Virus record (IMG/VR): IMGVR_UViG_3300046660_000219
Span: 1 to 64,000 of that record
DNA: 64,000 bases
Reading direction: 5' to 3' (one strand)
The notes beneath the pieces are model-generated. The model worked only from the letters and a program-made list of their open reading frames with translations. It did no database searches and was not told the DNA's origin. The position numbers and the translations under genes were made by a program. Positions 1 to 61,112 of the stretch are shown in pieces (position 1 is the stretch's first letter; every line of letters starts with the position of its first letter).

Positions 1-1913
1 GATTGCGGCGTAACCACCAACAGATTGTCGTAACCGTTGTCTAAAACAGTAGGCAACAACTCTGCTAGTGCATGACGATTAGACGCCTGCGAACCGGCCT
101 CGATTTCGTCCAGCACCAGTGTACGCAAGCGCGCGTCAATAGGCAAGCAGAGCTGTGTAGAAACGGCCATCAGCAACATGAACACCCGGCTCTCATGCCC
201 AGAAAAGGTAGATACGTTTGCGGCCGCACCTTTGCGGTTGGCGATCAACGCACCAGCTTGCCAATCAAACTCCACAGGATAACTGTAGAAATTCTGAGAG
301 TGTTCGTTGAGCATAGCCACAAGGTGCGCTCCTACCATTTCTAGGTATGGATTACGGGCGTTCTTGCTCTCAAGCGCCTTGAGCATTTCGCGGATCAGTT
401 CAACGTCTTCGGTTTCCGGCAGTTGATCTAACTCGCTGCTGACCGTAGCGAAACGCTTGGCAGACGCCGAGAACTCAAGCTGTTGCTCGCGGTAGTCTGA
501 CAGAGATCGGATATAATGCGATAGCTTCTCGTGGCTAGCCGCCAACGTGTCGTACTGTTTTTCAGCATCGTCTGTAGCCATGACGAAGCCCTTCTCGCGT
601 AGCGCTAGCTCATCCTTGGCGTCGTCTATGCGATTGACGTCGGGGCGCGCGGTCTTCGGTCGTTTTACCTTTTTAAGATTAAAATCGCATGTACGGTTAT
701 GCTGTGCGGCGTCCTCTAACTCGTCAAGGTCGCGCACCAGGGCCATAAAACCCTCCGGGCTAACTTTGAGCGATGCTTGAATGCTGTCGATCCTATTGGC
801 CGCAGTTGCAAGCTCGGCCGACATAACCGCTGCTGCTATTTCACCCTCGACGCGTCGTAATTCTTTGGACATGGTACGCAGCATGATATCGCGATTTATT
901 TTACCATTACATGTCGGGCATTTGTCGTTATCATGAGCGCCTTTGAGATGAGAAACGCTAACACGCAAGTGACTAAGCCTATCTTGCAGAGCCGTAGCAT
1001 GACGGAGAGCACGAGCGCGGTTACGCGGCGGCACGTGCTTACCGTAAACAACTTCCCAGATGTATGGCAGTTGGTGCGCGTTGAGTCGTGTGTAGATTTC
1101 ACGTGCCAGCTCTAGGCGTTTAACGTCGAGAGGGCGCGGTTTAGGCGCGGCTTCGTATTCGTCGAAGTCTTGCCACGCCTGGAGATCCGCTTCCCCATCT
1201 TTTACTATTTGCTTAAGAGCAGCATCGCTTTCATGGGCGAGCGGCCGCACGGTATCCAGTTGTTCGCCGAGACGTTCCGCTCGCTCACGAATGGTAGCCT
1301 TGCGGCTCTGCAACGTCGCCAGCTTTTCATCAATCTTCGGGATAACTCGGAAGCTGGAAACAGATGGCTGCAACGCGTCGATTTCAGTTTGCAACCGCGA
1401 ACGAATTTCCGCTGTCAGACCCTCGCGATCGTAGATGGCGGACATGGCCTTGCGCAGTGTATCGAAAACAGTAAGACCAACAATGTCAGCGAGCAACTCG
1501 TTGCATTGGGTTGCATTACCAGACAAGATCGTGCCGGAGCGCAGCGCCGAGATGTAGTTAACAGTAGAGAAAGCCGAGTACGACAACGGCATACGCTTCT
1601 TCAGCCAAGCCTTAGCCGTACCTTTAAGGCGAATCTCCTGGGCTTGATTGTCTTCCATGCACCGCCATGACGTCTTACCTTTAACGGCTTGGACGAAACA
1701 CGAAGCTGGGACGCCGTTGTTCTCCCACGATACGCCCAATGTAGAGCCAGCGGTCAGCTTGCTTTGATCGAAGAACACGTCAGGAATAGTCGCGGCCAAC
1801 ATGGATTTTCCCGCTGCGTTGTTACCAGTGACAATGGTAACTCCGTCACGCAGCGGGAGAGTCATGCGGTAGCCGAGATGACCGACACGCGAAACGCTGG
1901 TCAGCTTCGTCAT
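1..1913 (-). CDS. Rad50/SbcC (gp46-like) SMC-family ATPase, 3' end beyond left window edge
   Basis: Absent from the ORF track; translated by hand from ATG 1913: Walker A GNNAAGKS, coiled coil with CPTC zinc hook, signature FSGHE, Walker B LVLDE; frame open to the edge. Confidence 0.9.
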   Translation of the reverse strand, partial: MTKLTSVSRVGHLGYRMTLPLRDGVTIVTGNNAAGKSMLAATIPDVFFDQSKLTAGSTLGVSWENNGVPASCFVQAVKGKTSWRCMEDNQAQEIRLKGTAKAWLKKRMPLSYSAFSTVNYISALRSGTILSGNATQCNELLADIVGLTVFDTLRKAMSAIYDREGLTAEIRSRLQTEIDALQPSVSSFRVIPKIDEKLATLQSRKATIRERAERLGEQLDTVRPLAHESDAALKQIVKDGEADLQAWQDFDEYEAAPKPRPLDVKRLELAREIYTRLNAHQLPYIWEVVYGKHVPPRNRARALRHATALQDRLSHLRVSVSHLKGAHDNDKCPTCNGKINRDIMLRTMSKELRRVEGEIAAAVMSAELATAANRIDSIQASLKVSPEGFMALVRDLDELEDAAQHNRTCDFNLKKVKRPKTARPDVNRIDDAKDELALREKGFVMATDDAEKQYDTLAASHEKLSHYIRSLSDYREQQLEFSASAKRFATVSSELDQLPETEDVELIREMLKALESKNARNPYLEMVGAHLVAMLNEHSQNFYSYPVEFDWQAGALIANRKGAAANVSTFSGHESRVFMLLMAVSTQLCLPIDARLRTLVLDEIEAGSQASNRHALAELLPTVLDNGYDNLLVVTPQ

Positions 1914-1921
1914 GATTACTA

Positions 1922-3091
1922 TTACTTTCGTCTGTTGACCGTGTCACCGGCTTGAGGCAACTCCGCCTTCAACAAGCCTTCGGCAATGCCTGGGGTGAGT
2001 GCGTAGCCAAGAAGCACGTCAAAAAGAATGATAGGTGGAACGTTGCCAGCAGAGGCGTGCGTCAGGGCCATGCCGACCGCGCGTTGCAAACGCACAACGT
2101 CGCTGACGTTGAAATCACCGCGCTTCATACCCTTAGCTAAGGAATTGAATTGCTCGCGAGTGTCACCGTCAACCCACATGGACAGGCCAAGCAATGCTCG
2201 AAGGTATTTACCCATGGCCATAAGAGTAGACGTGGTGATTTGCTCGTACTTAGCGTTGCCATTGGTGTGGCCGCCGACAAGCAACGCGCCTAGCAGATGC
2301 AGCGCCCCGCGCTCATCCGCAACGTCTTCAATTGTAGTGGAACCACCTAGCGCAGTCAATACCTGCCTAGGATTGGCCAAGCTATGCAAAGCATTGTCGG
2401 ATAGCGTTGGCTTACCATAACGCTTGGCGTATTTATCCGCGAACTTACGCAGTGCTTGTGCATCCCATGATGGTGCACGGATAATAGTAAATCGATCCTT
2501 GAACGTAGCCAGCAGCTTGTTAGGCATGTTGGTACAAGCAATGAACAGCGCGCCGCCCGGTTTGGGGCGTTCCAGCGGGGTTAGCAGCGCAGACACCGCC
2601 TCTTCCGTCAGCTTATGAACTTCGTCTAGTAGATAGACCTTGCGCTTGCCGGGATGCGCCACCAACGGCATGTCGCACATCTCAACGATCTTGCGGATGT
2701 CTGCTACCTTACCATCAGTACCGCAATTGACTTCGTTCAGAAGCTTGTCGGGGATGTTACCGTTTTCGTCCATGACAAGTTCATTGGCGATGGCTTGCGC
2801 CAAAGTTGTCTTACCATTACCAGTAGGGCCGATGATCAGGATACCGCGCGAGGTTTGCGCCATCTCCGTGTAACTGTCGATCTGCGCAGGCGTGATGTTG
2901 TCCAGAGCTGCCAGGGAGCCTGGACGTGCGTCAATGTTCAGTTGGGTACGTGGAACGCGTACAGCGCCCCTGTCAGGCGTCCTTACGGGCTTGGTGGTCG
3001 TTGATGGAGCCACACCCCGATTGGGGCGCTCGCTACCAGTACGTCGCGTGGCAACAACCTTCTTGATAGGCTTGATGGGTGCTTTAGCCAT
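1922..3091 (-). CDS. AAA+ clamp-loader subunit, DnaX (gamma/tau)/RFC-like
   Basis: GPTGNGKTT; KVYLLDEVHKLTEEAVSALLTPLERP matches the DnaX DEVH...LLKTLEEP pattern; basic N-terminal extension, no Zn finger. Confidence 0.85.
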   Translation of the reverse strand: MAKAPIKPIKKVVATRRTGSERPNRGVAPSTTTKPVRTPDRGAVRVPRTQLNIDARPGSLAALDNITPAQIDSYTEMAQTSRGILIIGPTGNGKTTLAQAIANELVMDENGNIPDKLLNEVNCGTDGKVADIRKIVEMCDMPLVAHPGKRKVYLLDEVHKLTEEAVSALLTPLERPKPGGALFIACTNMPNKLLATFKDRFTIIRAPSWDAQALRKFADKYAKRYGKPTLSDNALHSLANPRQVLTALGGSTTIEDVADERGALHLLGALLVGGHTNGNAKYEQITTSTLMAMGKYLRALLGLSMWVDGDTREQFNSLAKGMKRGDFNVSDVVRLQRAVGMALTHASAGNVPPIILFDVLLGYALTPGIAEGLLKAELPQAGDTVNRRK

Positions 3092-3115
3092 AAAATGGTA
3101 TCCTGGGCTTGGCGC

Positions 3116-3157
3116 AAAGAAAAAGCCCCGCGACCTGTTGAGGGGCCACGGGGCTTT
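3116..3157 (-). terminator. Intrinsic terminator
   Basis: AAAGCCCCG...CGGGGCTTT stem with adjacent A-run (U-tract on minus strand). Confidence 0.7.
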
Positions 3158-3195
3158 GGTCGTCGTTAAACTAACGACGTGGAACCAGAGGTGTA

Positions 3196-4302
3196 TTAGC
3201 CTTCGATCGCGTCGGCCGGGACCGTCAAGGCCGGGATTGCTTCATCGTCGGCACGCACGTTCCCCAGTGCATCGCCATTGGCTTGCATGATGGCCGTGAG
3301 CACCTTGTTGAAATCGGCGGCTTCCAAGTTCTGCACGAACGCTTGGGCGTGCGCCGCTTCTTCCTCCGAAAAGGTAGAAACGTCGCCGACCATCTTGACG
3401 GCTTCGCGCACGATCTGACGCGTGTTCTTGGTGATCAGCGCGTCCTTAACGAACGGCGCGAGACCGTCGTACCACAGGCTGTCGAGGGTCGCCGCCGACG
3501 TCGTGATCAGGCCGATCAAGTTGTCGGTAGTCAGCAGGTTGTCGAGAGCTTCGCCGGGCGTCAAATCAGCGCTACCGTTTTCGATGGCGGCGTCCGCGAA
3601 GTCGTCTTCACCGCGCGGCGCGAGAACTTCGTCGTCCTCTTCCTCGCCGAAGACAACCACATCGTCGTCTTCACCATACACCGGCACGTCTTCCGCCGCG
3701 AGTTGATCTTCGCCTTCTTCGTGCAATTCCGGCAGATCATCGTCGTCATCGTCGTCGAAGTTGACGGCCGACATGTCGAAGTTGTTAGTACCATTATTTT
3801 CGTCATCGACGATCGTATCGTCGTCTTCGTCGTCAGCGTCTTCTTCGCTGTCGTCGCTTTGACCTTCCGTCGCGACCATCGCGTCGTCGTAGCGACCTTC
3901 CTTCAGGGCTTGCGCCATGTCGGCGGCAGCGGTGTAGATGATGGCCAAGCCAGCTTCCACGGCTTCTTCGATTTGACCCATACCGGTGCTGTTACCATTT
4001 CCGCCAGCACGCAGCGCGGCGACTTCGGCTTGCAGCTCGGCGTTCTCGGATTGCAGAGCGTCCAGGGCGGCTTGATTGGCCAGACGCTCTTGATTGAGTT
4101 CGTCTTGCAGGCGCTCGATGTCCTTGCGCGCGTCCTCCAGCAAGGTCTGAGCAGTGCGCGCGTCGGTCTGGTATTGCTTACCCAGCTCCTTCAGCCGCGC
4201 ACGCGACTCCATGGCTTCTTCGTAGGTCTTCGGCTTGGGGTTACCCTTTTTGACCGGGATAGCTTGTCCCGGCTTCACGGGCGGGCGAAGGATGGCGTTC
4301 AT
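3196..4302 (-). CDS. Hypothetical coiled-coil protein with long acidic region
   Basis: 368 aa; heptad-like N-terminal half, D/E-rich middle; own promoter and terminator. Confidence 0.8.
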   Translation of the reverse strand: MNAILRPPVKPGQAIPVKKGNPKPKTYEEAMESRARLKELGKQYQTDARTAQTLLEDARKDIERLQDELNQERLANQAALDALQSENAELQAEVAALRAGGNGNSTGMGQIEEAVEAGLAIIYTAAADMAQALKEGRYDDAMVATEGQSDDSEEDADDEDDDTIVDDENNGTNNFDMSAVNFDDDDDDDLPELHEEGEDQLAAEDVPVYGEDDDVVVFGEEEDDEVLAPRGEDDFADAAIENGSADLTPGEALDNLLTTDNLIGLITTSAATLDSLWYDGLAPFVKDALITKNTRQIVREAVKMVGDVSTFSEEEAAHAQAFVQNLEAADFNKVLTAIMQANGDALGNVRADDEAIPALTVPADAIEG

Positions 4303-4355
4303 GTAGTGATGTCCCTTTGCAAAGGTCCGGCAAGGTCGCCGGGTTGTGACCCCTT

Positions 4356-4384
4356 ATCTTAGCAGGTTAACGGGCCTTGCGCAA
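4356..4384 (-). promoter_or_regulatory. sigma70-like promoter TTGCGC-N17-TAAGAT
   Basis: Exact 17-bp spacer, GC just before the -10, upstream of the 4302 start. Confidence 0.5.
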
Positions 4385-4423
4385 ATATCCCGCCCTGTAA
4401 GGGGTTTAGATCAATTAGACGAG

Positions 4424-5029
4424 CTATTCCGCGAGCGCTATCACGTCTACGACATGACCGAAGTAGAGGTAGGTAAGACATGCTTGTCGATTAACGCCCA
4501 CGTCCGAATAGATGTTGTATGGGTTACCATTAATCAATCGCAAGACATGCGTAATGACCATGTTATTAGACGGATCATTCCAGTCCACGTCGATAGCTCG
4601 ACCCTCTAGAATAGCGTCCAAGCTGGCGCGCGGTAAACGGTAACTTACCAGCGCATGTAAGCGTCGATGAAAGGTAGCGCGCCCGGCGTTCAACGTAAGC
4701 ACCAGTTCCGCGTCATCCATGCTATACTTTACGCGGTTCAGTTCAGGGTGCGTGAAATCGTTAACATCTAGTGTCGGACGCACAATCGACAAGACGCTAG
4801 GGGCGTGCATGCCACGTGCCGTGATTACACCCGGCGCTATGCATTCAACCTCATAAAGGTATTCAACCTTGTCCTGGGCGCACAACAGCGCGTGATCGCC
4901 GACAGGATCTATACCTTTACTGGACCAACGTAGCTGGTTAATAGAACGTGGCGATAGCGTACACGCATGTACTGAGTTGTGTATAACGCCTCCACTGTAC
5001 ATGCGCGATAGATGTTTTTTACTAGCCAT
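4424..5029 (-). CDS. Hypothetical protein
   Basis: Track ORF 4424..5101; start moved to MASKK at 5029, abutting the upstream stop. Confidence 0.7.
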   Translation of the reverse strand: MASKKHLSRMYSGGVIHNSVHACTLSPRSINQLRWSSKGIDPVGDHALLCAQDKVEYLYEVECIAPGVITARGMHAPSVLSIVRPTLDVNDFTHPELNRVKYSMDDAELVLTLNAGRATFHRRLHALVSYRLPRASLDAILEGRAIDVDWNDPSNNMVITHVLRLINGNPYNIYSDVGVNRQACLTYLYFGHVVDVIALAE

Positions 5030-5030
5030 C

Positions 5031-5465
5031 TTAAGTCTTCCTACGAGAGCGCGACACCGGTATACGTACGTAGTCGTTGGCGTCATGAGGCGCGTAAACA
5101 ACAGTACCGGGTGTCATAGATTTTGTGATTTTAGCGTTGGTCGCTGGTTGAGCGCATGTGACGAAAGACACGTCGCGCATACGCAGATTGATCCAACGTA
5201 AATCAGTAGCTTGCCCATTGATGTAGACGGGTTCACGATCGGGAAGCTTACCGGTATGCAACCACTGCGCCAACCTTCCGGCGCTAAGTGCAATGCGTTC
5301 CCCGTTGAGCATAATACTGACAAATACCACACCGTCTACGTTCCAAGCTTGCAGACCAATCTTACCTTTTATACAGGATTCGTGGCGCTCACTAGACGGG
5401 ATAGTACTGATCTCACCTGTATGAGGATCATATTTGAGGTACAGGTTCCAGGCGATTGAAGACAT
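5031..5465 (-). CDS. Degenerate HNH_3-type endonuclease homologue
   Basis: YDPHTG...GRLAQWLHTGKLP...VYINGQATDLRWINLR versus canonical HRLAW...DHINGxxxDNRxxNLR. Confidence 0.65.
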   Translation of the reverse strand: MSSIAWNLYLKYDPHTGEISTIPSSERHESCIKGKIGLQAWNVDGVVFVSIMLNGERIALSAGRLAQWLHTGKLPDREPVYINGQATDLRWINLRMRDVSFVTCAQPATNAKITKSMTPGTVVYAPHDANDYVRIPVSRSRRKT

Positions 5466-5572
5466 CGCAGGCTCTCACAATAAATAGTAAATCCAGCGTG
5501 AGCCTCTGCGCGCACGGGTGGTTCTCGTCTAGCAAATTAGCAAAACCGTGTTTTGGCTGGAATCATGGCACG

Positions 5573-5602
5573 AAAAAAGCCCCCAGGAAATTCCTGGGGG
5601 CT
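5573..5602 (-). terminator. Intrinsic terminator after H1-like gene
   Basis: AGCCCCCAGGAA-A-TTCCTGGGGGCT with A6 run. Confidence 0.85.
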
Positions 5603-5637
5603 CTCTTCATTCAGAAACGGTAGCCGAAGCTAACGTC

Positions 5638-6309
5638 TTACTTCATCGAACGCGCGCGCGACTTCGGCTTAGCGGCAGCCTTGGCCGGAGCCTTGGCGGC
5701 GGGCTTCGACGGCTTCGCGGCCTTCGGCGCAGGCTTGGCAGCGCGTTGCGGCTTAGCCGGCGGCGTCGGAGCCTTAGCGGGCTTCTTCGGCGCGGCCTTG
5801 GCCGGAGCCTTAGCAGCAGGCTTGCTAGCCTTTTGCGGCTTAGCCGGAGCGGCAGCAGCGGGCTTCTTCTTCAGCTTGCTCGGATCGGTCTTCGAACCGG
5901 GCGGACGGCCAAGACGCTTGATCTTACGACCGCCCTTGGTCATGCCGGTCTTAATGGCACGCTTAACGGCAAGACCAATCTTCTTATTCCAAGCAGGCGT
6001 GCGGACTTGCTTGTGCGTCTTAGCAGCCTTCTTGGCGGCGACCGAAGCAGCCATATCCTTCTTACGCAGCTTGCCGGTACCCTTATCGACGATCATACCT
6101 TTCGGCACGTTCTTGACAGGGGCCTTGTTTTGCAGGACCGGCTTAGCCTTCGGCTTACGCGCGGCGACCGGTTCGGCCTTGTGCACCGGAGCCTTCTTCA
6201 CCGGCTTACCGGGCTTGGTCGGCTTCGCCGTGGTCGCGGTCGGGGTCTTCTTGGCGGGCTTCTGCGGCTTAGCCGGAGCGGCCGCCTTCTTAACGGGCTT
6301 ACGGGCCAT
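5638..6309 (-). CDS. Histone H1-like K/A/P-rich basic protein with AT-hook-like motif
   Basis: PAKPQK/KPAAKAPAK repeats; KRLGRPPGSK. Confidence 0.8.
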   Translation of the reverse strand: MARKPVKKAAAPAKPQKPAKKTPTATTAKPTKPGKPVKKAPVHKAEPVAARKPKAKPVLQNKAPVKNVPKGMIVDKGTGKLRKKDMAASVAAKKAAKTHKQVRTPAWNKKIGLAVKRAIKTGMTKGGRKIKRLGRPPGSKTDPSKLKKKPAAAAPAKPQKASKPAAKAPAKAAPKKPAKAPTPPAKPQRAAKPAPKAAKPSKPAAKAPAKAAAKPKSRARSMK

Positions 6310-6430
6310 GATTGGCTCTCCTATTCGAGTTGAGGACTTCCACTTGGTATCAACTCAACCCTTCGGAGGTCGGCGTCAATCCGTTGTGGCTTCGGACTTA
6401 ACAGTATTTAATTAGTAAGGTACGGTTAAG

Positions 6431-6459
6431 GGTATAGGCCTTTAGCATTTCACTGTCAA
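6431..6459 (-). promoter_or_regulatory. sigma70-like promoter TTGACA-N17-TATACC
   Basis: Consensus -35, 17-bp spacer, -10 lacking the last T as is common in Alphaproteobacteria. Confidence 0.6.
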
Positions 6460-6462
6460 CAC

Positions 6463-7836
6463 CTATCTCGTGCCTTGTCTGGGCTCGATACCCATAAACA
6501 ATTTCTGCGCCACAATCTTCTCTGCATACATGGGGAACAGCGTAGCTTCAATCTCAGACGGTCCAACCAATTTGGTCTGCGTAGATACCGATGTGACCCG
6601 AAGATCCTTGTCTGAGATGGTATCCAGATCAGTCACCCTCCACACTAAAGCATATTTGGCTTCAGCAATGATAGAGTTGTTGTCGATGATCCCGACTTCA
6701 GCAGGCAGGGTAACAGTAAGTGGGTTGGCCTTGACTACCTGATCGAGGCCAGCTTGCGCCGTATAGTTACTCACCTGACCCTTCAGCATTATATGGCGCA
6801 CAGTAAGATCAACGTGCGTAAGCTTTTGCGGCTGGTTTGAGATGTTGGTTACTTTTACCACTAAATCATCGAGCGGTGACTGTGCGAAATCTTTGAGATT
6901 AGGTGAAGGTGTACCATTGCTACCGATGGAGAAAGCAAACTGTAAGCCAGCCGCCGCGTCACGGTTGTTGCGTGCCAGGGTCCAGGCAACCGTGAAATAG
7001 CTAGGCAGTGAAGTTCGCCACGCCGCATAACCGCCCGGCTGAATAGTCCACACCGGAACCTTGGCGTTATCTTCGTCAAGGACAGCACCCTCTGCTTCAT
7101 ACGCATACTCGACCGGCAAGATACGATGCGTACCACCCCACAAAGAGTAACCACCGATGAAGCCGGTGTTTAGGCACAGCGGACAGGCGGTATGTGTCAT
7201 ACCTAAAAGGTATGCATTGTCGAGGAGCATCTGCTCCGGGTTCCAAGACTGCTCACCTTCGAAATCGGCGATTAGTTGATCGGAAAACAGACCATCCGTA
7301 TTATCCCATTCGTGGTCTAACGGGTTCTGACCTGGGCCACCCGGCGTCACACGACCGTAACCGTGCAGCGCCTCCAACGGATCAATGGTAGGCTCAACAT
7401 CACTATCTTTAGTAGCTTCGAAATGGTGAGCCGGTTCAGCGTCAGAAACCAACGGCTTTTCCCATTCGGTGTGACGATGCGCAGGCGACACGTCAACGGC
7501 GTGTACCTTAATACTGCTATAACCGTCGTTGACGCTCGGCACGTGAGGCGAGTCATCTATACTGACCACATTGGGATCGGTGTTGGGCTCATCTTCTGGT
7601 GCACCACCTCGACAAGGACACGTCTCCCCAGCGTACAGGCGTTGCCACAGAAAAAGAGTAACACCATCGATGTTGGAGATGGCTTCCTTCTGACGCCTAG
7701 CGCTGGCGGCGGCTAGGGCCGCTAACGTGTCGTTAGCATTATCACCAATACCTGTGTTGGCAGGCACAATACCGGGAGCAAGACCAACACCAGTCGGGTG
7801 TAGACTAACGCCCCCTTGTCGGGGTCCAAAGCGCAT
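6463..7836 (-). CDS. Putative virion (head-closure-like) protein
   Basis: CPC...CPLCLNTGFIGGY Zn-ribbon pattern recalled from jumbo myovirus structural proteins. Confidence 0.45.
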   Translation of the reverse strand: MRFGPRQGGVSLHPTGVGLAPGIVPANTGIGDNANDTLAALAAASARRQKEAISNIDGVTLFLWQRLYAGETCPCRGGAPEDEPNTDPNVVSIDDSPHVPSVNDGYSSIKVHAVDVSPAHRHTEWEKPLVSDAEPAHHFEATKDSDVEPTIDPLEALHGYGRVTPGGPGQNPLDHEWDNTDGLFSDQLIADFEGEQSWNPEQMLLDNAYLLGMTHTACPLCLNTGFIGGYSLWGGTHRILPVEYAYEAEGAVLDEDNAKVPVWTIQPGGYAAWRTSLPSYFTVAWTLARNNRDAAAGLQFAFSIGSNGTPSPNLKDFAQSPLDDLVVKVTNISNQPQKLTHVDLTVRHIMLKGQVSNYTAQAGLDQVVKANPLTVTLPAEVGIIDNNSIIAEAKYALVWRVTDLDTISDKDLRVTSVSTQTKLVGPSEIEATLFPMYAEKIVAQKLFMGIEPRQGTR

Positions 7837-7979
7837 GCGGCTCGTCCTTGTAAAAGGTAGTCATCAAGGGGCTGTTGCGCTAATTTGCTGATAACCGGGT
7901 CATCACGCGCGCCTGCCTACTCACAAGTAAATTAGCCCACGTGTCGAGTATGGGTATTAGAGTAAGCAGCGTCATAAGA

Positions 7980-8654: not shown

Positions 8655-8658
8655 AAAA

Positions 8659-8919
8659 ATGGCTACCAACAAACTGCGTTACCTTTCTATGCAGATACCG
8701 GCCGATCGGTTCCCGCCCAACATGAACCTCACACTAATTCCCGCCAATAGTCTCATAGGAAAACTATTGGCGGCCATTGATGGCACGGTAACTAAGAAGA
8801 TCGATAGTAAAGGAAATACTAGTGTACGTATTTCCGGCGCTTTGAAATCAGCAGGCGTCATCCCTGATGAATTTAAGCGCCGTAACAAGCTGGCCAGTAT
8901 TCCTAAGTGGGGTGAGTAG
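8659..8919 (+). CDS. Hypothetical protein
   Basis: 86-aa ORF tightly packed between neighbours. Confidence 0.65.
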   Translation: MATNKLRYLSMQIPADRFPPNMNLTLIPANSLIGKLLAAIDGTVTKKIDSKGNTSVRISGALKSAGVIPDEFKRRNKLASIPKWGE

Positions 8920-8920
8920 A

Positions 8921-52252: not shown

Positions 52253-52253
52253 C

Positions 52254-53798: not shown

Positions 53799-53844
53799 TA
53801 GTGTAGATTACCATTACGCTCTAAACAATATAGGAGTTACAGCT

Positions 53845-54642: not shown

Positions 54643-54657
54643 TAAGGAAATAGTAAC

Positions 54658-56040
54658 ATGGCTACTGCCGTTTTGTCGGCTTCTGATCTCGCCACGGCGG
54701 GTGGTTCGATCAATCTTTCGACGCGTTTGCGTCGCCTTGCGGAAAGGGCTGCGCTAAGTAACCCTTTCGATACGCCGCCTTTGGTGGTTCCACCCGACTA
54801 CGCTAACTCTACGGCGCTCCTGCAAGGGCACGTCGTCAAGAGTGGCGGTAACATGTTCATGACGGTGACGGCTGGTACTACTGCATCTAGCGGTACGCCG
54901 TCTACAGCCAATGGTGACGCCAATACTAACGGTACGGCGGCCCTGGCTTTCATGGGACCTATACCGCGCACCGCCGACGATCCTAGCGCACCTACTGTTA
55001 CTTTCGTAACGAGTAACCCGGCGCTCGGCGTTGTCTGGGACCCGGTTGGTAATCCTACTCTTTATCGTGCACTAGGTGCTACGCCGCAAGCCTATCGTAC
55101 GTCTCTCTGGGAGCTGCGTTCTTTCGTCCCGGCTGCTAGTGCGGCTACTGTTTGTCGTAGCGCGGTCATTCAGACGATCGTGGACGATTTCAAGTTCGCT
55201 GTCTCCATCCCGTCGAATTCGCAAAGTGTGCGTATCGCTATTGACGGTCAATTCTACAGTGTGTCGAGCTGGAACCCTGGTGGTTCTGACTCCTGGGCTG
55301 TTTTTGACTACACCGGCAAAGCCGCGAAGAAGCATCGCCTCGTTAGTGTTTACACTAACAAGAGCACTAGCTATTTCGGTGGCGTGCAAACGACCACGGC
55401 TGGACAGATTCACACGCCACCCGTCTCTGACACCATCAGAATGGTAGAATGTGCTGACAGCCTTGGCGCTGGTGCTGGTCCTGGCCCGTGGGGTGCGGGT
55501 AACGCCCCGGCTGTCGCTTTCGGTTCGATGATCGGCGTCGAAGATGTGTGGGTGCTGTCTACCGGCTCGACCGGCGACATCGCTAACGCTACTAACACTG
55601 CGTACAATTACGCAGAGCGCGTTCCGCAGATCATTGCTCTCGCGCCGCATATCATTTGGATACCGACATCGACTAACGATCTCGTGTCCACTACGAGTGC
55701 GGTTACCGCCGCACGTGTCGCTACGCTGCAAGCGTTACGCGCTGGTTTGCCTAACGCAATCATCGTCAATGAAGGTATCTGGCCCGTTCTGAACGGTGGT
55801 AACACCGCTGCTGTGACGGCACTAGAGAACGCTGTAAAAGCGGCTCACGATACCGTTGTTGACGCGCGCATGTTCTGGGTTCCGCGTGCTACTGAAACGC
55901 CGCCGTGGATCACCAGCAACAACCGTGGTTGGAACATCGCGGCCGACGGCATTCACCCGCCTGACGCGGGTTCGTTGTACATCGCCCGTCAGCGTGCGCT
56001 CGCTTGGCGTCGCTACGTCCTACCGTTCTTGCAAGGCTAA
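54658..56040 (+). CDS. Tagged SGNH hydrolase
   Basis: MATAVLSASDLATAGG; ADSL, STND, DGIH. Confidence 0.8.
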   Translation: MATAVLSASDLATAGGSINLSTRLRRLAERAALSNPFDTPPLVVPPDYANSTALLQGHVVKSGGNMFMTVTAGTTASSGTPSTANGDANTNGTAALAFMGPIPRTADDPSAPTVTFVTSNPALGVVWDPVGNPTLYRALGATPQAYRTSLWELRSFVPAASAATVCRSAVIQTIVDDFKFAVSIPSNSQSVRIAIDGQFYSVSSWNPGGSDSWAVFDYTGKAAKKHRLVSVYTNKSTSYFGGVQTTTAGQIHTPPVSDTIRMVECADSLGAGAGPGPWGAGNAPAVAFGSMIGVEDVWVLSTGSTGDIANATNTAYNYAERVPQIIALAPHIIWIPTSTNDLVSTTSAVTAARVATLQALRAGLPNAIIVNEGIWPVLNGGNTAAVTALENAVKAAHDTVVDARMFWVPRATETPPWITSNNRGWNIAADGIHPPDAGSLYIARQRALAWRRYVLPFLQG

Positions 56041-56060
56041 CGCACAAAGGAAATACTATT

Positions 56061-57389
56061 ATGACAACTGCGGTCCTTGCTGCTTCAGATTTAGCCACGG
56101 CTGGTGGTGCGTTAGCTAACGGGTCGCGCTCGTTCACTGGTACGCGCGTCTATACGGGCATGGGTGTAACTGCGTCTACCGCCTATCCTGGCTACACTTG
56201 GCAACAAATGGTAGCTGCGCCTGGACCTTTTGACGCTGTGCGCTTGATTTTCGCCAACACTACCAACGCTGCCGTGACGATTGACGCGGTGTGTTGCGGC
56301 GCTACGTCTAGCATTGCCGCTTATGATAACGTCTCAGGTACGGGTGTCAGCGGTCGTGCGGCACAATGGGTGCTAGGGAAATTTACAGCACCGGGAGCGG
56401 CTAGCACAACGGCTGGTGTAATGCCTGCCAACACCAACGCTGACATTACGGTAGAAGCGCTGGCGGGTGGTGCTACCTTTGCTACCATTCCTTCGCTCTT
56501 CTATTCCGACTGGATGGCTTGTGAGAGTGTAGCGCGCACGGATGGCGGTACAAAGCCGTTGGTTTTGGTGCGCGCTTACATTTCCCAGGCTGGTGCTATT
56601 CCGCTGTTTGGTACGAACTCATCGATCCCGGATTGGGATGACGAGACCAAGATCGGACTGGTTATTCAGAACCGACAGAAGGTGAATGACTTCGTCACCG
56701 TTAACAACGGTAGCTACACTTTTGCCGGCGAATTCCCGAACAATCCCATTCTTGGCGTTGAGTTCGCCATGCGCGTTCCTACTATTACGATGGTAGGCAT
56801 TGGCGATAGTAAGGTGCGCGGTCAGGCCAGCACGCCTGACGGCTACAATTATATGGAGATTTTAGCTAACTCTGTCAGCACTTTGACGGCTCCTGTCATA
56901 CCGGCCATTTACGGATGGGGCGGCCAACAGACGTCGTACAATTTCTCGCGCTGGCAGAAGCTTATTGCGGCTGGTATCAAACCACAAATTGCGATCTTCT
57001 CGCCGTTCTCTCAGAACAACTGGACAGGTACGGCCAGCCAAGTGTCGTCGGCGCAATATGCTACTATTCAATTCGTACGCTCCTGTTGCGAACGCGGTAT
57101 CTTCCCTATCCTCGTGACCGGCGAACCTATTGGTGCGGTTGACGACAGCAGCCCTACTCTACAAGCAGATAATGCTAGAAAGCTGGTGAACACTTTCATC
57201 CGCAATCTTGAGAGCACTTACGTGGGTGTCTTCGACAACGCAACGGTTATGGGTGACGGTGCTACGCCAGAACGGTATAAGCCATCTATGGTTAGCTCTG
57301 ACCACGTGCACCCCAACCTTGTCGGTCATCAAGCTGCCGCTACAGCGGCGTTGCCGAAACTGCAAGCGATCCTCGCGCGTATTCGCTAG
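56061..57389 (+). CDS. Tagged SGNH hydrolase
   Basis: MTTAVLAASDLATAGG; GDSK, SQNN, DHVH. Confidence 0.8.
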   Translation: MTTAVLAASDLATAGGALANGSRSFTGTRVYTGMGVTASTAYPGYTWQQMVAAPGPFDAVRLIFANTTNAAVTIDAVCCGATSSIAAYDNVSGTGVSGRAAQWVLGKFTAPGAASTTAGVMPANTNADITVEALAGGATFATIPSLFYSDWMACESVARTDGGTKPLVLVRAYISQAGAIPLFGTNSSIPDWDDETKIGLVIQNRQKVNDFVTVNNGSYTFAGEFPNNPILGVEFAMRVPTITMVGIGDSKVRGQASTPDGYNYMEILANSVSTLTAPVIPAIYGWGGQQTSYNFSRWQKLIAAGIKPQIAIFSPFSQNNWTGTASQVSSAQYATIQFVRSCCERGIFPILVTGEPIGAVDDSSPTLQADNARKLVNTFIRNLESTYVGVFDNATVMGDGATPERYKPSMVSSDHVHPNLVGHQAAATAALPKLQAILARIR

Positions 57390-57410
57390 CACATTCAAGG
57401 AATAAATAGT

Positions 57411-58571
57411 ATGACCACAGCAGTTCTCGCCGCGACGGATCTATCTAAGGCAGGCGGCGCGCTAAGGCAGTTTCGCGCGGCGTTCTCCAAAACCGGTACG
57501 CTGGGAAATACCGATACTACCGGTATTTCGGATGGTGTGGCCACTTCAGAAACCAGTCGTGATGTCTTCATGTCGCCGCCGTATCAAGTTAGCGACATTC
57601 AACTGTGCTTCAGCAATATCTACATCAACTCATCCGGCGAAGCTGTCACTACTAACGACATAACGGTACAAGCGAACGTCGAGATCGCAGGTGTGTCTTA
57701 TCCGCTGTTCCAGGCCGGTCGCCGTAACATGGTGCTGGAGCCGGGTGCGGTTGACGTACCGTTTGATCCACTAGCCATCGACATTCCCGCTAACACTGCG
57801 ATGTACTATCGGGTCTACGTTAGTGTTTCGTCTGGTGGCGTGTGGCCGCGTGGGCGTTTCGGCCGCCATAATCGCGCAGGCGGTATTACTGCTGGCGCGA
57901 ACTCTACGGCGGCTATTGGTACGCTACCTAACGATCAAGGCCAGTACATTTACGGTCCCAGCCTAGTGCTAGGTCGTACCGTTGGTAACTCGGCTCCTAG
58001 TGTTCTTGTTGTTGGTGATAGCCTCGTGGCTGGGCAAGGTGACACTGGCGACGCTAACGGCGCAGTCGGCTTCGCGGAACGCGCACTGACTGGTGTAGTA
58101 GGTTACACTACCCTTACCAAGTCCGGCTATCTGATGACGTCGCTCACCAACTCGCACACGCGGTCGCTGGCGCGCTGCACGCAGTTCTGCTCATCGGCCA
58201 TCTTGGAGCTTGGCTCTAACGATATTTTCGGCTCGCACGTCAACCTTGCCACCATGCAAAGCCGTGCGGCGGCTGGTGCCGCGCTCCTGAAGAATCGTGG
58301 TCTCAAGGTCTTTATGACTACTATTATGCCACGTTCGAGTGGCGGTGTGTCGGCTAACCCTACCGATAGCGCAACCACGGCGGCGTACAATGATTGGCTG
58401 CGCCTAGGTCAGTCATTCATGGACGGTCTGTTCGACATTGCTGACATCTGTGAGACGACGCGGAATTCGGGTCTGTGGAAGCCGGCGCTGCAACCGGGTG
58501 ATGGCATTCACCCCAACGGTGCTGGTTACGCTACTATTTCTGCGGGCATAATCACCAGTCAATTGGTCTAG
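57411..58571 (+). CDS. Tagged SGNH hydrolase
   Basis: MTTAVLAATDLSKAGG; GDSL, GSND, DGIH. Confidence 0.85.
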   Translation: MTTAVLAATDLSKAGGALRQFRAAFSKTGTLGNTDTTGISDGVATSETSRDVFMSPPYQVSDIQLCFSNIYINSSGEAVTTNDITVQANVEIAGVSYPLFQAGRRNMVLEPGAVDVPFDPLAIDIPANTAMYYRVYVSVSSGGVWPRGRFGRHNRAGGITAGANSTAAIGTLPNDQGQYIYGPSLVLGRTVGNSAPSVLVVGDSLVAGQGDTGDANGAVGFAERALTGVVGYTTLTKSGYLMTSLTNSHTRSLARCTQFCSSAILELGSNDIFGSHVNLATMQSRAAAGAALLKNRGLKVFMTTIMPRSSGGVSANPTDSATTAAYNDWLRLGQSFMDGLFDIADICETTRNSGLWKPALQPGDGIHPNGAGYATISAGIITSQLV

Positions 58572-58594
58572 CCACACATAGAAAAGGTAGGATC

Positions 58595-58936
58595 ATGAAT
58601 GAGCGCCCGGTAATCCGCCGTTTGGCTAGTAAGGACGATCCAGAAGGCGTGACACGTTTTCGTTTCCCTTGTCCCGGCTGTGAGTATGGTCATTGGGTAC
58701 GTGTGAACGCAGCAGATTCTCCCAACTGGACGTGGAATGGCGACTTCGTGCGTCCTACCTTTTCTCCTAGCGTGCATGTCTTTCCTGGCGGCAGCCTGCA
58801 GACTAAAGCCGAAGGTGCGCGAGACGGCACGTGTCACAGTCACGTCATTGATGGCAACATACAGTTTCTTAGCGATTGCTGGCACGACCTCAAGAATCAG
58901 ACTGTGCCGCTACCGCCACTCGACTACGGAGATTGA
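58595..58936 (+). CDS. DUF6527-like Cys/His protein
   Basis: CPGC..H, WTWNGD..PTFSPSV, CHSHV.DG.IQFLSDC.H. Confidence 0.75.
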   Translation: MNERPVIRRLASKDDPEGVTRFRFPCPGCEYGHWVRVNAADSPNWTWNGDFVRPTFSPSVHVFPGGSLQTKAEGARDGTCHSHVIDGNIQFLSDCWHDLKNQTVPLPPLDYGD

Positions 58937-58939
58937 ACC

Positions 58940-59209
58940 ATGGCAGTTAAAGACGGCCGCACGCATAAGAGTAAAGCACATCGCAAAGCTATTTCAGACG
59001 GTCTACGCGCTTACCACGCCAACAAGAAGTTGGGTGCTTACTACAAGCTCGATTCTCCAAGTAAGTGGCGTAAAAACCTAAAGAGTTCTATGGCAAAGCT
59101 AGAGCGTGAGATTAAAAATAATTCCGCTAGAGGGCTGCCAGCAAATAGAGAAAAGGCTATGCTGGCCAGTTATGCCAAGCTGCTGGCTAAAGGCCCTCCT
59201 AGCAATTAA
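58940..59209 (+). CDS. Small basic protein
   Basis: K/R-rich 89 aa. Confidence 0.65.
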   Translation: MAVKDGRTHKSKAHRKAISDGLRAYHANKKLGAYYKLDSPSKWRKNLKSSMAKLEREIKNNSARGLPANREKAMLASYAKLLAKGPPSN

Positions 59210-59227
59210 TAATAGGATTAGCAAATT

Positions 59228-59623
59228 ATGCCTAGCAGCAAGTGGTTCAACAGCCTGTCGCCACAGCGCAGGAAAGCTTACCTTAAACAGCACAAGAAAT
59301 CCAAGTTCCACGGCAAGCCTGTCAGTGGAGCCAAACCGGTGATTGGCGCACGCCCTAGCCTGGGTGGTGCTATCCAACCGTCCACGGCGGTTAAACCCGG
59401 CCAAAAGGCCGCTGTAAAGCCGCCTGGGAGCCACTTACAGGGCGTGAAGCCCGGTGCGCCTAACCCCGAGGCCGAAAAGCCGATCAAGCTTGTCCCCAAG
59501 GCTCCTAGCGATCACGACGGCAAGGCCGCGCCCGCTAGAGACGTCAAGAAACCTGACCCGGCGCGGGTAAAGGGTTTCACCAACAAGGTCGGCGACGCGA
59601 TCCGTCGTGCGCTCAAGTCGTAA
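59228..59623 (+). CDS. Basic protein with WxxxxSP..Y...H..SK motif
   Basis: WFNSLSPQRRKAYLKQHKKSK. Confidence 0.7.
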   Translation: MPSSKWFNSLSPQRRKAYLKQHKKSKFHGKPVSGAKPVIGARPSLGGAIQPSTAVKPGQKAAVKPPGSHLQGVKPGAPNPEAEKPIKLVPKAPSDHDGKAAPARDVKKPDPARVKGFTNKVGDAIRRALKS

Positions 59624-59635
59624 GGAAATAGTAAC

Positions 59636-60880
59636 ATGGTAACTGCGGTCCTTGCTTCTACGGACATTGCTACGGCTGGTGGTTCACTAAAAGAGTATGT
59701 ACCACGTCGCTTGATTCACGTTGGGACGCGCTCTGGTAACAACGGTGTTGGACAATCAAACGGTACGAACCTTCAATTCAATACCGTTACCAACCATTAT
59801 GTGCCGATCGCCGCTCGCGGTTTGCGTTTGATGTACGTTAACTTTCAAGTAGCGCAGGGCGCTGCCGAGGCTGATCAAACGGCTGACATTACCTTGAAAG
59901 TTGGCGCACGTCCCGCTGGTGCGTCGCCCGGTAAAACCCAACCTGACGCGCCGTCAATTGGTACCTGCCGCCGTGTTACTTGGGGCGGTGCTGTGTCCAC
60001 GACACTGTTAGGATCAGTGTCCGCTGTCGTCGGTAGCACCAACGCAATATCGGATCCACTACCTTTTTATCTGCCCGGCAACACTCTGCTATCAGTGCAG
60101 ACGTACGCTACCTTGACGTCTGGTCAGTACTGGCGAGGGCGTGGCGTAATTAGTGGCCCCGGCGAACGTAACGAAGAAGGCGTTACCGTTACCGATCGCT
60201 CGATTTCTGGTGGTGCGGCTGGTACGGCTGCGTGGTCCATCGGGCCTAACCTTATTTTAGGTATCCCTGATAACCCTAATGCTAGATCTGTGGCCATTAT
60301 CGGTGACAGTATCGCTACCGATACCGGAGACACGGCCGATACTTCGACTGGTATTGTTGGTTACGTTGAGCGCGGGCTAGGTATTTCTGTACCTAACGCC
60401 AAATTCACGCGTGGTGGTACTAAACTCGCGCACTGGACCACGCGTAGCTATTCGCAAATGGATCTAATCGCGGCGTACTTCACCGATGCTATTATCGAAC
60501 TTGGCATTAACGACGTTGGCACGCCGTCTAGTCTTTCGACCATGCAGGCAGATGTTGGTGCGATCATCAACAAACTCCGAGCCCAAGGTCTGCGTATCTA
60601 TCTTGCTACGCTGACGCCGTGGACTACGTCCACTGACAGTTGGGTTACGACTACCAATCAAACGGTAACAGCTAACGAAGCTCTACGTGTTGCGTACAAC
60701 ACGTGGGTCCGCACTATGCCTTTGGGGATTGCTGGCGTGATCGAGGCGGCGGACATCGCTGAAACCGCCCGCAATTCTGGCATCTGGAAAGCAAATAGTA
60801 CGGCAGACGGTGTTCACCCTAACGCCGCTATGCACTTGCTGTTGTCCGCGTCTGTTACTCCTGCCATGTTTGGCTACTAA
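59636..60880 (+). CDS. Tagged SGNH hydrolase
   Basis: MVTAVLASTDIATAGG; GDSI, GIND, DGVH. Confidence 0.85.
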   Translation: MVTAVLASTDIATAGGSLKEYVPRRLIHVGTRSGNNGVGQSNGTNLQFNTVTNHYVPIAARGLRLMYVNFQVAQGAAEADQTADITLKVGARPAGASPGKTQPDAPSIGTCRRVTWGGAVSTTLLGSVSAVVGSTNAISDPLPFYLPGNTLLSVQTYATLTSGQYWRGRGVISGPGERNEEGVTVTDRSISGGAAGTAAWSIGPNLILGIPDNPNARSVAIIGDSIATDTGDTADTSTGIVGYVERGLGISVPNAKFTRGGTKLAHWTTRSYSQMDLIAAYFTDAIIELGINDVGTPSSLSTMQADVGAIINKLRAQGLRIYLATLTPWTTSTDSWVTTTNQTVTANEALRVAYNTWVRTMPLGIAGVIEAADIAETARNSGIWKANSTADGVHPNAAMHLLLSASVTPAMFGY

Positions 60881-60881
60881 G

Positions 60882-61112
60882 GTGGCGAAGGTTGTCAGCA
60901 AGAAAGGTAGCACGCAGAAAGATTGGTGGCACAGAATGTCACCGGAAGCGCGTGCTACCTATTTCCACAGCCACCCCAACAGCAAGCTACGCAAGGTGTC
61001 TGGCGTCAAGAAACCACTAGCCATTGGCGAGCTGTTGACCCTGCAAGACAAGCGGTTGCGCAAGCGTCGCGCCAAGTGGCACGACAGTAAAACCCGGCCT
61101 ATCCAGATCTAG
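60882..61112 (+). CDS. Basic protein with WxxxxSP..Y...H..SK motif
   Basis: WWHRMSPEARATYFHSHPNSK; GTG start right after upstream stop. Confidence 0.65.
   Translation: MAKVVSKKGSTQKDWWHRMSPEARATYFHSHPNSKLRKVSGVKKPLAIGELLTLQDKRLRKRRAKWHDSKTRPIQI

Follow-up and report, generated by a model that had tools for sequence, protein, structure and literature searches.

Why would a phage genome carry one short DNA word at ten times the number expected from its base composition, and what could such a word be used for? This question was raised by a 64,000-nucleotide stretch of the IMG/VR virus record IMGVR_UViG_3300046660_000219 (here the window), part of the 205,908-bp genome of a rhizosphere jumbo phage. 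The initial annotation of the window reported about 60 copies of the heptamer TACCTTT/AAAGGTA against about 6 expected, in both orientations and both inside and between genes, with Shine-Dalgarno use explaining only a few. It was proposed that the heptamer is a genome-wide binding or marking site, for instance for a DNA-organising protein, a Chi-like signal for the Rad50/Mre11 complex, or a self-recognition mark.

Abundance and definition of the site

The over-representation is real and had been understated. TACCTTT was found at every coordinate listed in the initial annotation, while dinucleotide shuffles of the window (51-55% GC) gave 5.72 +/- 2.49 copies with a maximum of 12. The whole genome holds 247 copies (157 on + and 90 on -), against 35.5 +/- 4.4 in third-order Markov simulations, and the reversed control word occurs 14 times on each strand. 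The heptamer is only one of six variants of a sharply defined site, TACCNTT plus TACTRTT, usually followed by T or A. Every single mismatch at a fixed position lowers the count from 247 to 7-32. Only position 5 is free and position 4 accepts C or T. No longer motif was found around the heptamer, beyond a T/A preference at position 8 and a weak pyrimidine preference at position 9. The full site occurs 953 times in the genome (523 on + and 430 on -), against 190 +/- 8 under a third-order Markov model.

Disappearance of the excess under codon-preserving shuffles had been named in advance as the outcome that would overturn the observation, but the excess persisted. With protein sequences kept and synonymous codons permuted, 96 sense and 121 antisense copies were observed against 14.8 and 24.4 expected (z = 22). 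Permutation of whole codons gave about 8 and 12 expected copies (z = 30-34), and over the synonymous and whole-codon shuffles z was 22-46. Copies lie in sense and antisense, in all three frames and between genes, although with frame preferences and a 3-bp periodicity in their distances. About 48 of 280 genes have the AANRGTA form 6-15 nt upstream of the start codon, and Shine-Dalgarno-like placement accounts for only about 5% of the sites. An independent Logan assembly of the same sample is 100% identical. This contig and a second rhizosphere run hold the identical phage, and thus gave no information on site conservation within this lineage. No DNA similarity to known phages was found, and an exact-peptide search of IMG/VR with the portal protein returned nothing.

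Table 1 Sites and candidate genes in the 64,000-nucleotide window
Position	Strand	Feature	Observations
45..63984		Full site family, 287 copies (148 on +, 139 on -)	TACCTTT 65, TACCGTT 63, TACCATT 58, TACTATT 48, TACCCTT 29, TACTGTT 24; mean gap 223.5 bp; coefficient of variation (CV) of gaps 0.69 against 0.995 +/- 0.058 for random placement; gaps under 50 bp: 17 against 57 expected
204..60909		Exact TACCTTT/AAAGGTA copies reported in the initial annotation	65 copies (30 on +, 35 on -)
1619..1682	+	Two same-strand copies 57 bp apart (1619-1625 and 1676-1682)	One of the rare close pairs
4855..4918		Two opposite-strand copies 57 bp apart (4855-4861 on -, 4912-4918 on +)	
29985..30952		Longest stretch between consecutive sites in the window	968 bp from the site at 29985 to the next site; longest in the whole genome 1081 bp
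21735..22709	+	DnaG/T7-type DNA primase	324 aa; Toprim_2, phrog_47; candidate reader only under the primase hypothesis; homologues in all relatives, including those without a motif
20603..21724	+	SbcD/Mre11-like metallophosphoesterase	373 aa; the nuclease meant in the initial annotation; conserved in relatives with and without a motif
19608..20477	+	H1-like protein rich in lysine, alanine and proline	289 aa, pI 10.6, 49% K+A+P; no family match; possible general DNA-coating protein, no link to the motif shown
5638..6309	-	Second H1-like open reading frame	223 aa, 64% K+A+P
47017..47577	+	Small DNA methyltransferase-like gene with an NPPW motif	phrog_799, E 7e-24; 38.7% identical over 142 aa to the RHEph12 'putative DNA methyltransferase', E 6e-25; not called in the source annotation; tested as the possible writer of the mark and found unlikely

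Even spacing and the same layout with other words

The sites are evenly spaced over the genome. The mean gap is 216 bp and the CV of the gaps is 0.676, against 0.998 +/- 0.031 for random placement. Gaps under 50 bp are four-fold depleted (46 against 197 expected), and gaps over 600 bp are also rare (19 against 59 expected). Among 136 other words of similar abundance the lowest CV was 0.92, and codon-driven words in other phages cluster, with CV above 1. Each variant alone has a CV of about 1, indicating that the variants are interchangeable. Orientation does not matter either. A null model with independent strands gave a CV of 0.850 +/- 0.023, with a minimum of 0.697 in 2000 trials (z = -7.5 for the observed value), and pair depletion at 8-40 bp is 0.20 for the same strand and 0.17 for opposite strands. 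At 40-100 bp same-strand pairs are slightly more depleted than opposite-strand pairs (0.52 against 0.72), and a minor strand-specific component can therefore not be excluded. Orientation is random along the genome, with 492 strand switches against 471 expected, and shows only a mild, uniform 55:45 strand bias that does not flip anywhere. No 10-11 bp helical phasing was found, only the 3-bp periodicity, and the pair correlation is flat beyond about 180 bp; a wrapped, nucleosome-like array is thus not indicated.

Two other lineages show the same layout with different words. The cultured Rhizobium phages RHEph12 and RHph_N46 (N46) use TNNTACC(A), with 1316 TNNTACC sites and a CV of 0.655 in RHEph12 and a CV of 0.648 in N46. 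The cultured Rhizobium phages RHph_I42, RHph_N28_1 and RHph_N42 show the same layout. An IMG/VR relative, here G001, has 909 TANTAA sites with a CV of 0.706. Among about 65 terminase relatives from IMG/VR only G001 shows the layout; in two others, G002 and G003, TACCT is enriched but randomly spaced. Each word is private to its genome, with densities of 4.6, 3.6 and 8.7 sites per kb in the home genome against 0.08-2.1 elsewhere. For the word of the present phage this amounts to 4.63 sites per kb against 0.24-1.2 in eight other sequences.

Comparison of RHEph12 with N46 indicated that the sites are under selection. The core mismatch rate is 0.039 against 0.090 in the flanks (p = 1e-28), while TACC lacking both the T three bases upstream and the A that follows shows no conservation (0.092). 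Of the sites 87% are kept, against 63% expected under neutrality. Of the lost sites 44% have a new site within 100 bp, against 10% near kept sites (p = 2e-22). The word is not enriched in a host-type replicon, being about 25-fold rarer there: Rhizobium etli p42d holds 57 TNNTACCA in 371 kb, against 700 in 194 kb of phage. The host of the present phage is not known, and the contrast between self and host was measured only for the Rhizobium relatives.

A private recognition site as tentative explanation, and its rivals

The interpretation given in the initial annotation is partly supported. A genome-wide binding or marking site, possibly a self-recognition mark, fits everything found, but the specific suggestion of a Chi-like signal for Rad50/Mre11 is not supported, and the equivalent variants, the regular spacing and the different words of related phages had been missed. 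The reading preferred here, which is held tentatively, is that TACCNTT/TACTRTT is a private recognition site, for docking or marking, kept at roughly one copy per 200 bp over the whole genome, in either orientation, under stabilising selection for coverage of the whole genome. The analysis itself demonstrates a discrete 6-of-7-base recognition sequence, maintained at the DNA level against coding constraints, whose six variants and two strands count as equivalent and whose copies are spread far more evenly than chance allows, a second copy within about 40-150 bp of a first being disfavoured and long empty stretches avoided; the conservation and local replacement of sites in the Rhizobium jumbo phages belong to this part as well. 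The remainder is deduction. The site would be read on double-stranded DNA by one sequence-specific protein, most likely phage-encoded, that binds or modifies it. The effect of this protein would reach about 75-100 bp to either side, so that full coverage of the chromosome needs a site every 150-250 bp. As the same word is about 20-fold rarer in host-type DNA, the system would label phage DNA and not host DNA. Possible uses are shielding or organising the phage's own DNA, or exempting it from a nuclease or silencer that acts on unmarked DNA. Specificity would have changed repeatedly (TACYNTT, TANTAA, TNNTACCA), each genome being rewritten to match.

Neither the reader protein nor the downstream effect was identified. 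No protein was shown to bind or modify the site and no gene was found that tracks the trait. Profiling the presence of this phage's proteins in RHEph12, G001, PaBG, Yoloswag, RSL1 and G003 showed that the only genes shared solely by the three trait-bearing genomes are structural. A DUF6011 zinc-ribbon-like protein is shared with RHEph12 only, but it carries a short motif domain and was not found in G001. No link to the H1-like or wHTH proteins, which the initial annotation had put forward for binding tests, could be shown, and lysine/alanine/proline-rich H1-like proteins also occur in relatives that lack any such motif.

Several other explanations have been weighed, all of which appear unlikely. 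The phage primase might require 5'-AANRGTA-3' on the template, with dense sites selected for lagging-strand priming because a 7-mer is rare by chance. GTA would be analogous to GTC of T7 and GTT of T4, giving a primer that starts pppAC. The other strand of the site indeed ends in GTA, resembling the GT-plus-cryptic-base sites of the T7 and T4 primases, the density would give fragments of a few hundred nucleotides, and the RHEph12 word also contains GGTA. However, priming acts on the lagging-strand template only, so that each strand's set would be selected independently, whereas the spacing regularity is a property of both strands pooled. Furthermore, of five relatives with homologous primases, PaBG, Yoloswag, RSL1 and Ep026 have no enriched word, the extended primase sites of T7 itself are at most 2-fold enriched, and the G001 word has no GT; priming at the word in vitro was not assayed. 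Alternatively, a modified base rather than a bound protein could be the self-mark. A short asymmetric word with a degenerate centre is typical of methyltransferase targets, a homologue of the methyltransferase-like gene occurs in RHEph12 and N46, and the genome also encodes a ThyX-like protein, a dCMP deaminase and a P-loop nucleotide kinase of family PF18751. The methyltransferase is however absent from the syntenic portal-ligase interval and from the rest of the 141 kb (68%) of G001 that could be searched, and five unrelated alphaproteobacterial phages that carry it (GB2A, RHph_Y60, HMSP1-Susan, RcXuper and Atu_ph07) have no evenly spaced enriched word (lowest CV 0.91). Whether a cognate enzyme accompanies the word is not settled by this distribution. 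Only assembled contigs were examined, and neither base modification nor nicks in virion DNA were measured. No other DNA methyltransferase or base-exchange enzyme was seen in a Pfam tiling of the genome, and known modification targets are not over-represented or evenly spaced.

Less likely still is a Chi-like or other polar signal for a translocating nuclease or recombination machine, either host RecBCD/AddAB or the phage Mre11/Rad50. The word is over-represented, short and rare in host-type DNA, the phage encodes SbcD/Mre11-like, RecA/UvsX-like and PD-(D/E)XK nucleases, and alignment block ends between RHEph12 and N46 lie within 10 bp of a site in 25% of cases, against 14% for random positions. 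But polar signals are read on one strand, and their orientations should be independent or skewed with replication, while here they are interchangeable and mutually exclusive at short range; attenuation of a helicase-nuclease was not assayed. The mild enrichment of block ends near sites is also compatible with a molecular drive without cellular function, in which repair or gene conversion between co-infecting genomes favours the allele carrying the word, or a context-specific mutation or repair bias acts, as proposed for DNA uptake sequences and very-short-patch repair. Even spacing and turnover could in principle arise from such a recombination-linked drive. The one-mismatch neighbours TGCCTTT and TCCCTTT are depleted to 0.3x, and uptake sequences, for which a drive has been proposed, show similar statistics (PMC1939737; PMC7811141). 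However, a point-mutation bias from one or two neighbours cannot give a 5- to 12-fold excess at six fixed positions, the replacement of lost sites and avoidance of long gaps are what selection for coverage predicts, and a drive still needs a sequence-specific protein, differing from the preferred reading only in what that protein is for. Recruitment or titration of a host protein, such as a nucleoid-associated protein or silencer, is similarly doubtful. All three words are A/T-rich with TA steps in genomes of 51-54% GC, and the methyltransferase homologues and GANTC depletion point to an alphaproteobacterial host, but the closest relative uses a quite different word, each word is private to its own phage, the word is not enriched in the host-type replicon, and other phages of the same hosts lack any such word. 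A by-product of codon, codon-pair or amino-acid usage, or an assembly artefact, was tested and rejected: codon-driven words in other phages can exceed zero-order expectations about 9-fold, but the shuffles, the independent assembly and the separately sequenced cultured phages speak against it.

It is possible, though less likely than not, that some jumbo phages of soil alphaproteobacteria carry a previously undescribed self-marking system, in which a phage protein with a short, fast-evolving DNA specificity reads a private word kept by selection at one copy per 150-220 bp. Phage DNA would then be coated, protected or exempted as self, and switches of specificity would be followed by rewriting of about a thousand sites. 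If this holds, it is a new principle of phage genome organisation, with about 1,000 sites per genome maintained by stabilising selection purely for coverage, using a word that differs even between close relatives. Literature searches for a described equivalent found none. It would add a sequence-based way for a virus to tell its own DNA from that of the host, alongside base modification and the phage nucleus, and would explain part of the synonymous-site constraint in these genomes. The word is also a sensitive marker for binning and for recognising related phages, and any recoding or engineering of such phages would have to respect it.

Comparison with known dispersed sequence words

Stoperators of cluster A mycobacteriophages are likewise asymmetric protein-binding sites dispersed over a whole phage genome, but they are about 13 bp long, number about 25-35, lie mostly between genes, are oriented with transcription and serve repression in lysogeny. 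The localised single-strand nicks of phages T5, phiKMV and tf occur at phage-specific short consensus sequences acted on by a phage enzyme, and the tf consensus (5'-TACT/RTGMC-3') begins with TACTRT like the TACTRTT variant (PMC3517423). These phages have 4-14 sites, all on one strand (14 on the top strand in tf), against about 950 on both strands here. Targets of orphan or restriction-modification methyltransferases are normally avoided or neutral, not enriched and evenly spaced. Primase sites of T7 (5'-GTC-3', with GGGTC/TGGTC/GTGTC) and T4 (5'-GTT-3') differ in that priming is strand-specific, whereas the spacing rule here couples the two strands. Chi sites and other polar chromosome words (KOPS, SRS) are also over-represented short words that tell a DNA-processing machine that the DNA is self, but they are strongly skewed with replication direction.

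The closest match in anatomy is provided by the DNA uptake sequences of Pasteurellaceae (USS) and Neisseriaceae (DUS). These are short asymmetric words with hundreds to thousands of copies on both strands, inside genes and between them, with lineage-specific dialects and rare in foreign DNA. They are reported to be more evenly spaced than chance (Karlin et al., as cited in PMC1939737) and are read on duplex DNA as a self-label (PMC7811141). The phage site shares the strong over-representation in its own genome with rarity in others, the use of both orientations and the even spacing. Uptake sequences however belong to bacterial chromosomes and are read by the competence machinery, while the present sequence is a complete virus genome with portal, terminase and tail genes; a lytic phage has no DNA uptake step, and no reader of its site is known. 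The phage word is shorter, and its density is about 5-fold higher, with one site per 150-220 bp against about one per kb.

Definition, excess and spacing of the site

The over-representation of TACCTTT/AAAGGTA described in the initial annotation was confirmed. The heptamer occurs 65 times in the 64-kb window (30 on +, 35 on -), and every copy that had been located individually was recovered, whereas dinucleotide-preserving shuffles give 5.72 +/- 2.49 copies with a maximum of 12. GC content is 51-55% along the window. The window is the first 64 kb of a complete virus record of 205,908 bp, and this record holds 247 copies of the heptamer against 28 of the reversed control word. Markov-corrected k-mer scores placed six related words at the top, namely AAAGGTA, AATGGTA, AATAGTA, AACGGTA, AAGGGTA and AACAGTA. 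Enumeration of TACNNTT showed a 4- to 13-fold excess for TACC[ACGT]TT and TACT[AG]TT, while all other centres, including TACTTTT and TACTCTT, are at background. Every single substitution at a fixed position of TACCTTT drops the count from 247 to 7-32. The flanks carry no information except T/A at position 8 and a weak pyrimidine preference at position 9. The heptamer is one face of a wider, sharply defined site. This family has 953 copies (523+/430-), about one per 216 bp and spread over the whole genome, where third-order Markov simulations give 190 +/- 8, and the window holds 287 of them. For TACYNTT, the + orientation makes up 55% of cases (559 against 455). This bias is the same in the rightward and leftward gene blocks and follows neither transcription nor an obvious replication switch.

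Sites occur in the sense and antisense strands of genes, in all three frames (with preferences) and between genes, the frames being taken from longest-ORF gene calls made for this analysis. It had been proposed in advance that loss of the enrichment under shuffles preserving amino acids or codon pairs would disprove the observation, but the enrichment was retained. With every protein sequence kept and synonymous codons permuted within genes, using the same longest-ORF gene calls, the expected counts are 14.8 sense and 24.4 antisense for TACCTTT, and 102 and 144 for the TACYNTT family. The observed counts are 96, 121, 466 and 403, respectively (z = 22-40), and whole-codon permutation gives z = 30-46. 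The site is a DNA-level signal. In about 48 of 280 genes the AANRGTA form is found 6-15 nt upstream of the start codon, between an AAGGA-type Shine-Dalgarno sequence and the start codon (for example before 21735). This is an 8-fold local peak and represents a real but minor subset of the sites.

The sites are evenly spaced, irrespective of strand. Gaps between consecutive sites, with strand ignored, have a coefficient of variation (CV) of 0.676 against 0.998 +/- 0.031 for random placement. Gaps under 50 bp number 46 against 197 expected, gaps over 600 bp number 19 against 59 expected, and the largest gap is 1081 bp. The pair correlation is 0.18 below 40 bp, rises smoothly to 1 by about 150-180 bp and is flat beyond. 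Each strand taken alone (CV 0.82 and 0.83) looks like a random thinning of the pooled set, while independent strands would give a pooled CV of 0.850 +/- 0.023, with a minimum of 0.697 in 2000 trials. Pair depletion at 8-40 bp is 0.20 for same-strand pairs and 0.17 for opposite-strand pairs, and orientation along the genome is random, with 492 switches against 471 expected. Each single variant alone has a CV of about 1, so only the union is regular and the six variants are functionally equivalent. Among 136 other 5- and 6-mers of similar abundance the lowest CV is 0.92, and codon-driven frequent words in other phages have CVs of 1.2-1.5. A 10-11 bp phasing was sought and is absent; only the 3-bp codon signal is present.

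The phage genome and related phages

The source is a rhizosphere metagenome in which the phage is abundant (word depth about 315), and a second rhizosphere sample holds the identical phage at trace depth. A Logan assembly of the same sample is 100% identical and closes the circle through a 127-bp overlap. The 'direct terminal repeat' is this overlap, and the true ends are not known. Pfam tiling and PHROG scans show a jumbo myovirus-type phage with portal, large terminase, tail tube/sheath and baseplate genes. Its replication and repair genes encode a DnaG-type primase, an SbcD/Mre11-like nuclease, a SprT-like protein of 1053 aa, an SNF2 protein of 1967 aa, an NAD-dependent ligase, a DnaB-like helicase, PolA, a RecA/UvsX-like protein and type II topoisomerase. 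Genes for nucleotide metabolism and nucleases encode dCMP deaminase, a ThyX-like protein, ribonucleotide reductase and a PD-(D/E)XK nuclease. The large terminase as called is about 100 aa shorter than its relatives (about 750-830 aa), and its open frame extends upstream, while the DnaB-like helicase is unusually long. The portal is only about 31% identical to those of Rhizobium phage RHEph12, Pseudomonas phage PaBG and Erwinia phage Yoloswag.

Coordinates of the genes and regions discussed in the text
Feature	Position	Strand	Remarks
Histone H1-like protein	window 5638-6309	-	Rich in lysine, alanine and proline
Histone H1-like protein	window 19608-20477	+	Rich in lysine, alanine and proline
SbcD/Mre11-like nuclease	20603-21724		
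DnaG-type primase	21735-22709		
Stretch listed for the methyltransferase-like gene	window 46899-47577		No gene called here in the source annotation
Open frame of the methyltransferase-like gene	46939-47790		Overlaps the start of the ligase ORF by about 215 bp
Methyltransferase-like gene	47017-47577		NPPW motif; phrog_799
NAD-dependent ligase ORF	47576-49429		Either starts later or overlaps the preceding gene
Run of at least six paralogous proteins with GDSL/SGNH lipase-like domains	window 52530-62689		265-460 aa; interleaved with two BubE-domain proteins, in the structural module
Further GDSL/SGNH lipase-like protein	genome 83281-84516		
Large terminase and DnaB-like helicase	genome 108754-111174 and 111719-114616	- and -	Terminase 690 aa as called; helicase 965 aa

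The same layout, with other words, was found in two other lineages. The Rhizobium jumbo phage RHEph12 uses TNNTACC(A), and TNNTACCA occurs 700 times in it against 106 for the reversed control. The 1316 TNNTACC sites have a mean gap of 147 bp and a CV of 0.655, where the independent-strand null gives 0.866 +/- 0.021, and gaps under 40 bp number 76 against 314 expected. RHph_N46 behaves in the same way. The closest relative found in IMG/VR, here designated G001 (terminase 51% identical, 141 kb, 68% complete), uses TANTAA, with the palindrome TTANTAA 10-fold enriched. It has 909 sites with a mean gap of 154 bp and a CV of 0.706 against 0.999 +/- 0.033. Each word is private to its genome, with densities of 4.63, 3.62 and 8.74 sites per kb at home against 0.08-2.06 in the other genomes. 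PaBG, Yoloswag, RSL1, Xanthomonas Ep026, Vibrio GR11A, Pseudomonas phage Lauda, T7 and about 65 further terminase relatives show only codon-periodic words, although the screen of relatives used about 20 kb per genome and could miss weaker cases. In two further relatives, G002 and G003, TACCT/AGGTA is 2.5- to 5-fold enriched but randomly spaced (CV 1.0), which may be a remnant or a weaker form of the same core. In T7 the most over-represented 7-mers form a family CTNNAAG/CTTNNAG (CCTTGAG, CTCTAAG, CGCTAAG, CCTAAAG, CTTAAAG, CTTCAAG), each about 5-6-fold above composition.

Conservation in Rhizobium phages and comparison with host-type DNA

Selection was measured in the cultured pair RHEph12 and RHph_N46, and not in the lineage of the present phage. 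These two genomes align over 175 kb with 8.7% mismatches. In TNNTACCA sites the core mismatch rate is 0.039 against 0.090 in the flanks (p = 1e-28). TACC with neither the T three bases upstream nor the following A, which serves as an internal control, is not conserved (0.092 against 0.085). Of 1173 sites, 1023 (87%) are kept, against 63% expected under neutrality. Furthermore, of the 150 lost sites 44% have an N46-specific site within 100 bp, against 10% near kept sites (Fisher p = 2e-22). The first 50 kb, analyzed separately, gave the same picture. This is stabilising selection on local coverage, not on individual positions. Ends of alignment blocks between the two phages lie within 10 bp of a TNNTACC site in 25% of cases, against 14% for random positions, which could be a recombination link or merely alignment extension stopping at conserved sites.

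A 371-kb replicon of the host genus (R. etli p42d) holds 57 copies of TNNTACCA against 133 of the reversed control, which per kb is about 25-fold fewer than in the phage. The word is therefore not a host-type signal copied by the phage. The host of the present phage is not known, but two observations point to an alphaproteobacterium. Homologues of its small methyltransferase occur almost only in phages of Alphaproteobacteria, and GANTC is depleted in its genome, at 307 against 795 expected. GANTC is also depleted in Caulobacter phage GB2A and Sinorhizobium phage HMSP1-Susan, consistent with an alphaproteobacterial (CcrM-type) host. In contrast, GATC is over-represented in the present genome (1236 against 795), as is TGATCA (122 against 42).

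Candidate readers and interpretation

No reader of the site was identified among the candidates examined. Read on the other strand, the site ends in GTA, which recalls the primase sites GTC of T7 and GTT of T4. However, priming is strand-specific, homologous primases occur in relatives without a word, and T7's own sites are at most 2-fold enriched. The methyltransferase-like gene, which was not called in the source annotation, matches phrog_799 and the RHEph12 'putative DNA methyltransferase'. It is missing from the available 68% of G001, including the syntenic portal-ligase interval, and five unrelated phages that carry it have no regular word. The two H1-like proteins have counterparts in relatives without the trait. 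Similar proteins occur in RHEph12, PaBG and Yoloswag. Presence/absence profiling gave only structural proteins and a DUF6011-motif protein shared with RHEph12.

The excess, the sharp definition and the even spacing of the sites, as well as their conservation in the Rhizobium pair, are read directly from the sequences, while the protein that reads them, its reach and its effect are inferred. The data fit a site read on duplex DNA by one sequence-specific protein. In this view each site would serve roughly 75-100 bp on either side, a second site nearby would add little, and an uncovered stretch would be costly. Such a reading explains the soft-core pair correlation, the interchangeability of strands and variants, the compensatory turnover, the high, uniform density and the privacy of the word. 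Whether the protein coats, blocks, recruits or modifies, and what it protects against, is inference. There is no experimental or read-level evidence. Strand-specific machines such as primase and Chi-type nucleases fit poorly, and a purely mutational origin cannot give the observed excess. A recombination-linked drive is not excluded, but it too needs a specific protein. The interpretation in the initial annotation, a genome-wide binding or marking site with a Chi-like signal for Rad50/Mre11 among the examples, is partly supported, the Chi-like example being the part that fits poorly.

Among known systems, the uptake sequences of Pasteurellaceae and Neisseriaceae are the nearest in anatomy. They are over-represented, occur on both strands, sit inside genes, have dialects and are reported as evenly spaced (PMC1939737, PMC7811141). 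A phage, however, has no uptake step, and the density found here is about 5-fold higher. No description of this layout in phages was found in the literature, in a search that was limited and is not proof of absence. Stoperators, Chi, KOPS and methyltransferase targets were each judged to fail a defining feature, although for methyltransferase targets the test of whether a cognate enzyme co-occurs with the word had no clear outcome. The nick sites of phage tf (5'-TACT/RTGMC-3', 14 sites, one strand) share a few letters with one variant of the site, but not the numbers or the strand pattern.
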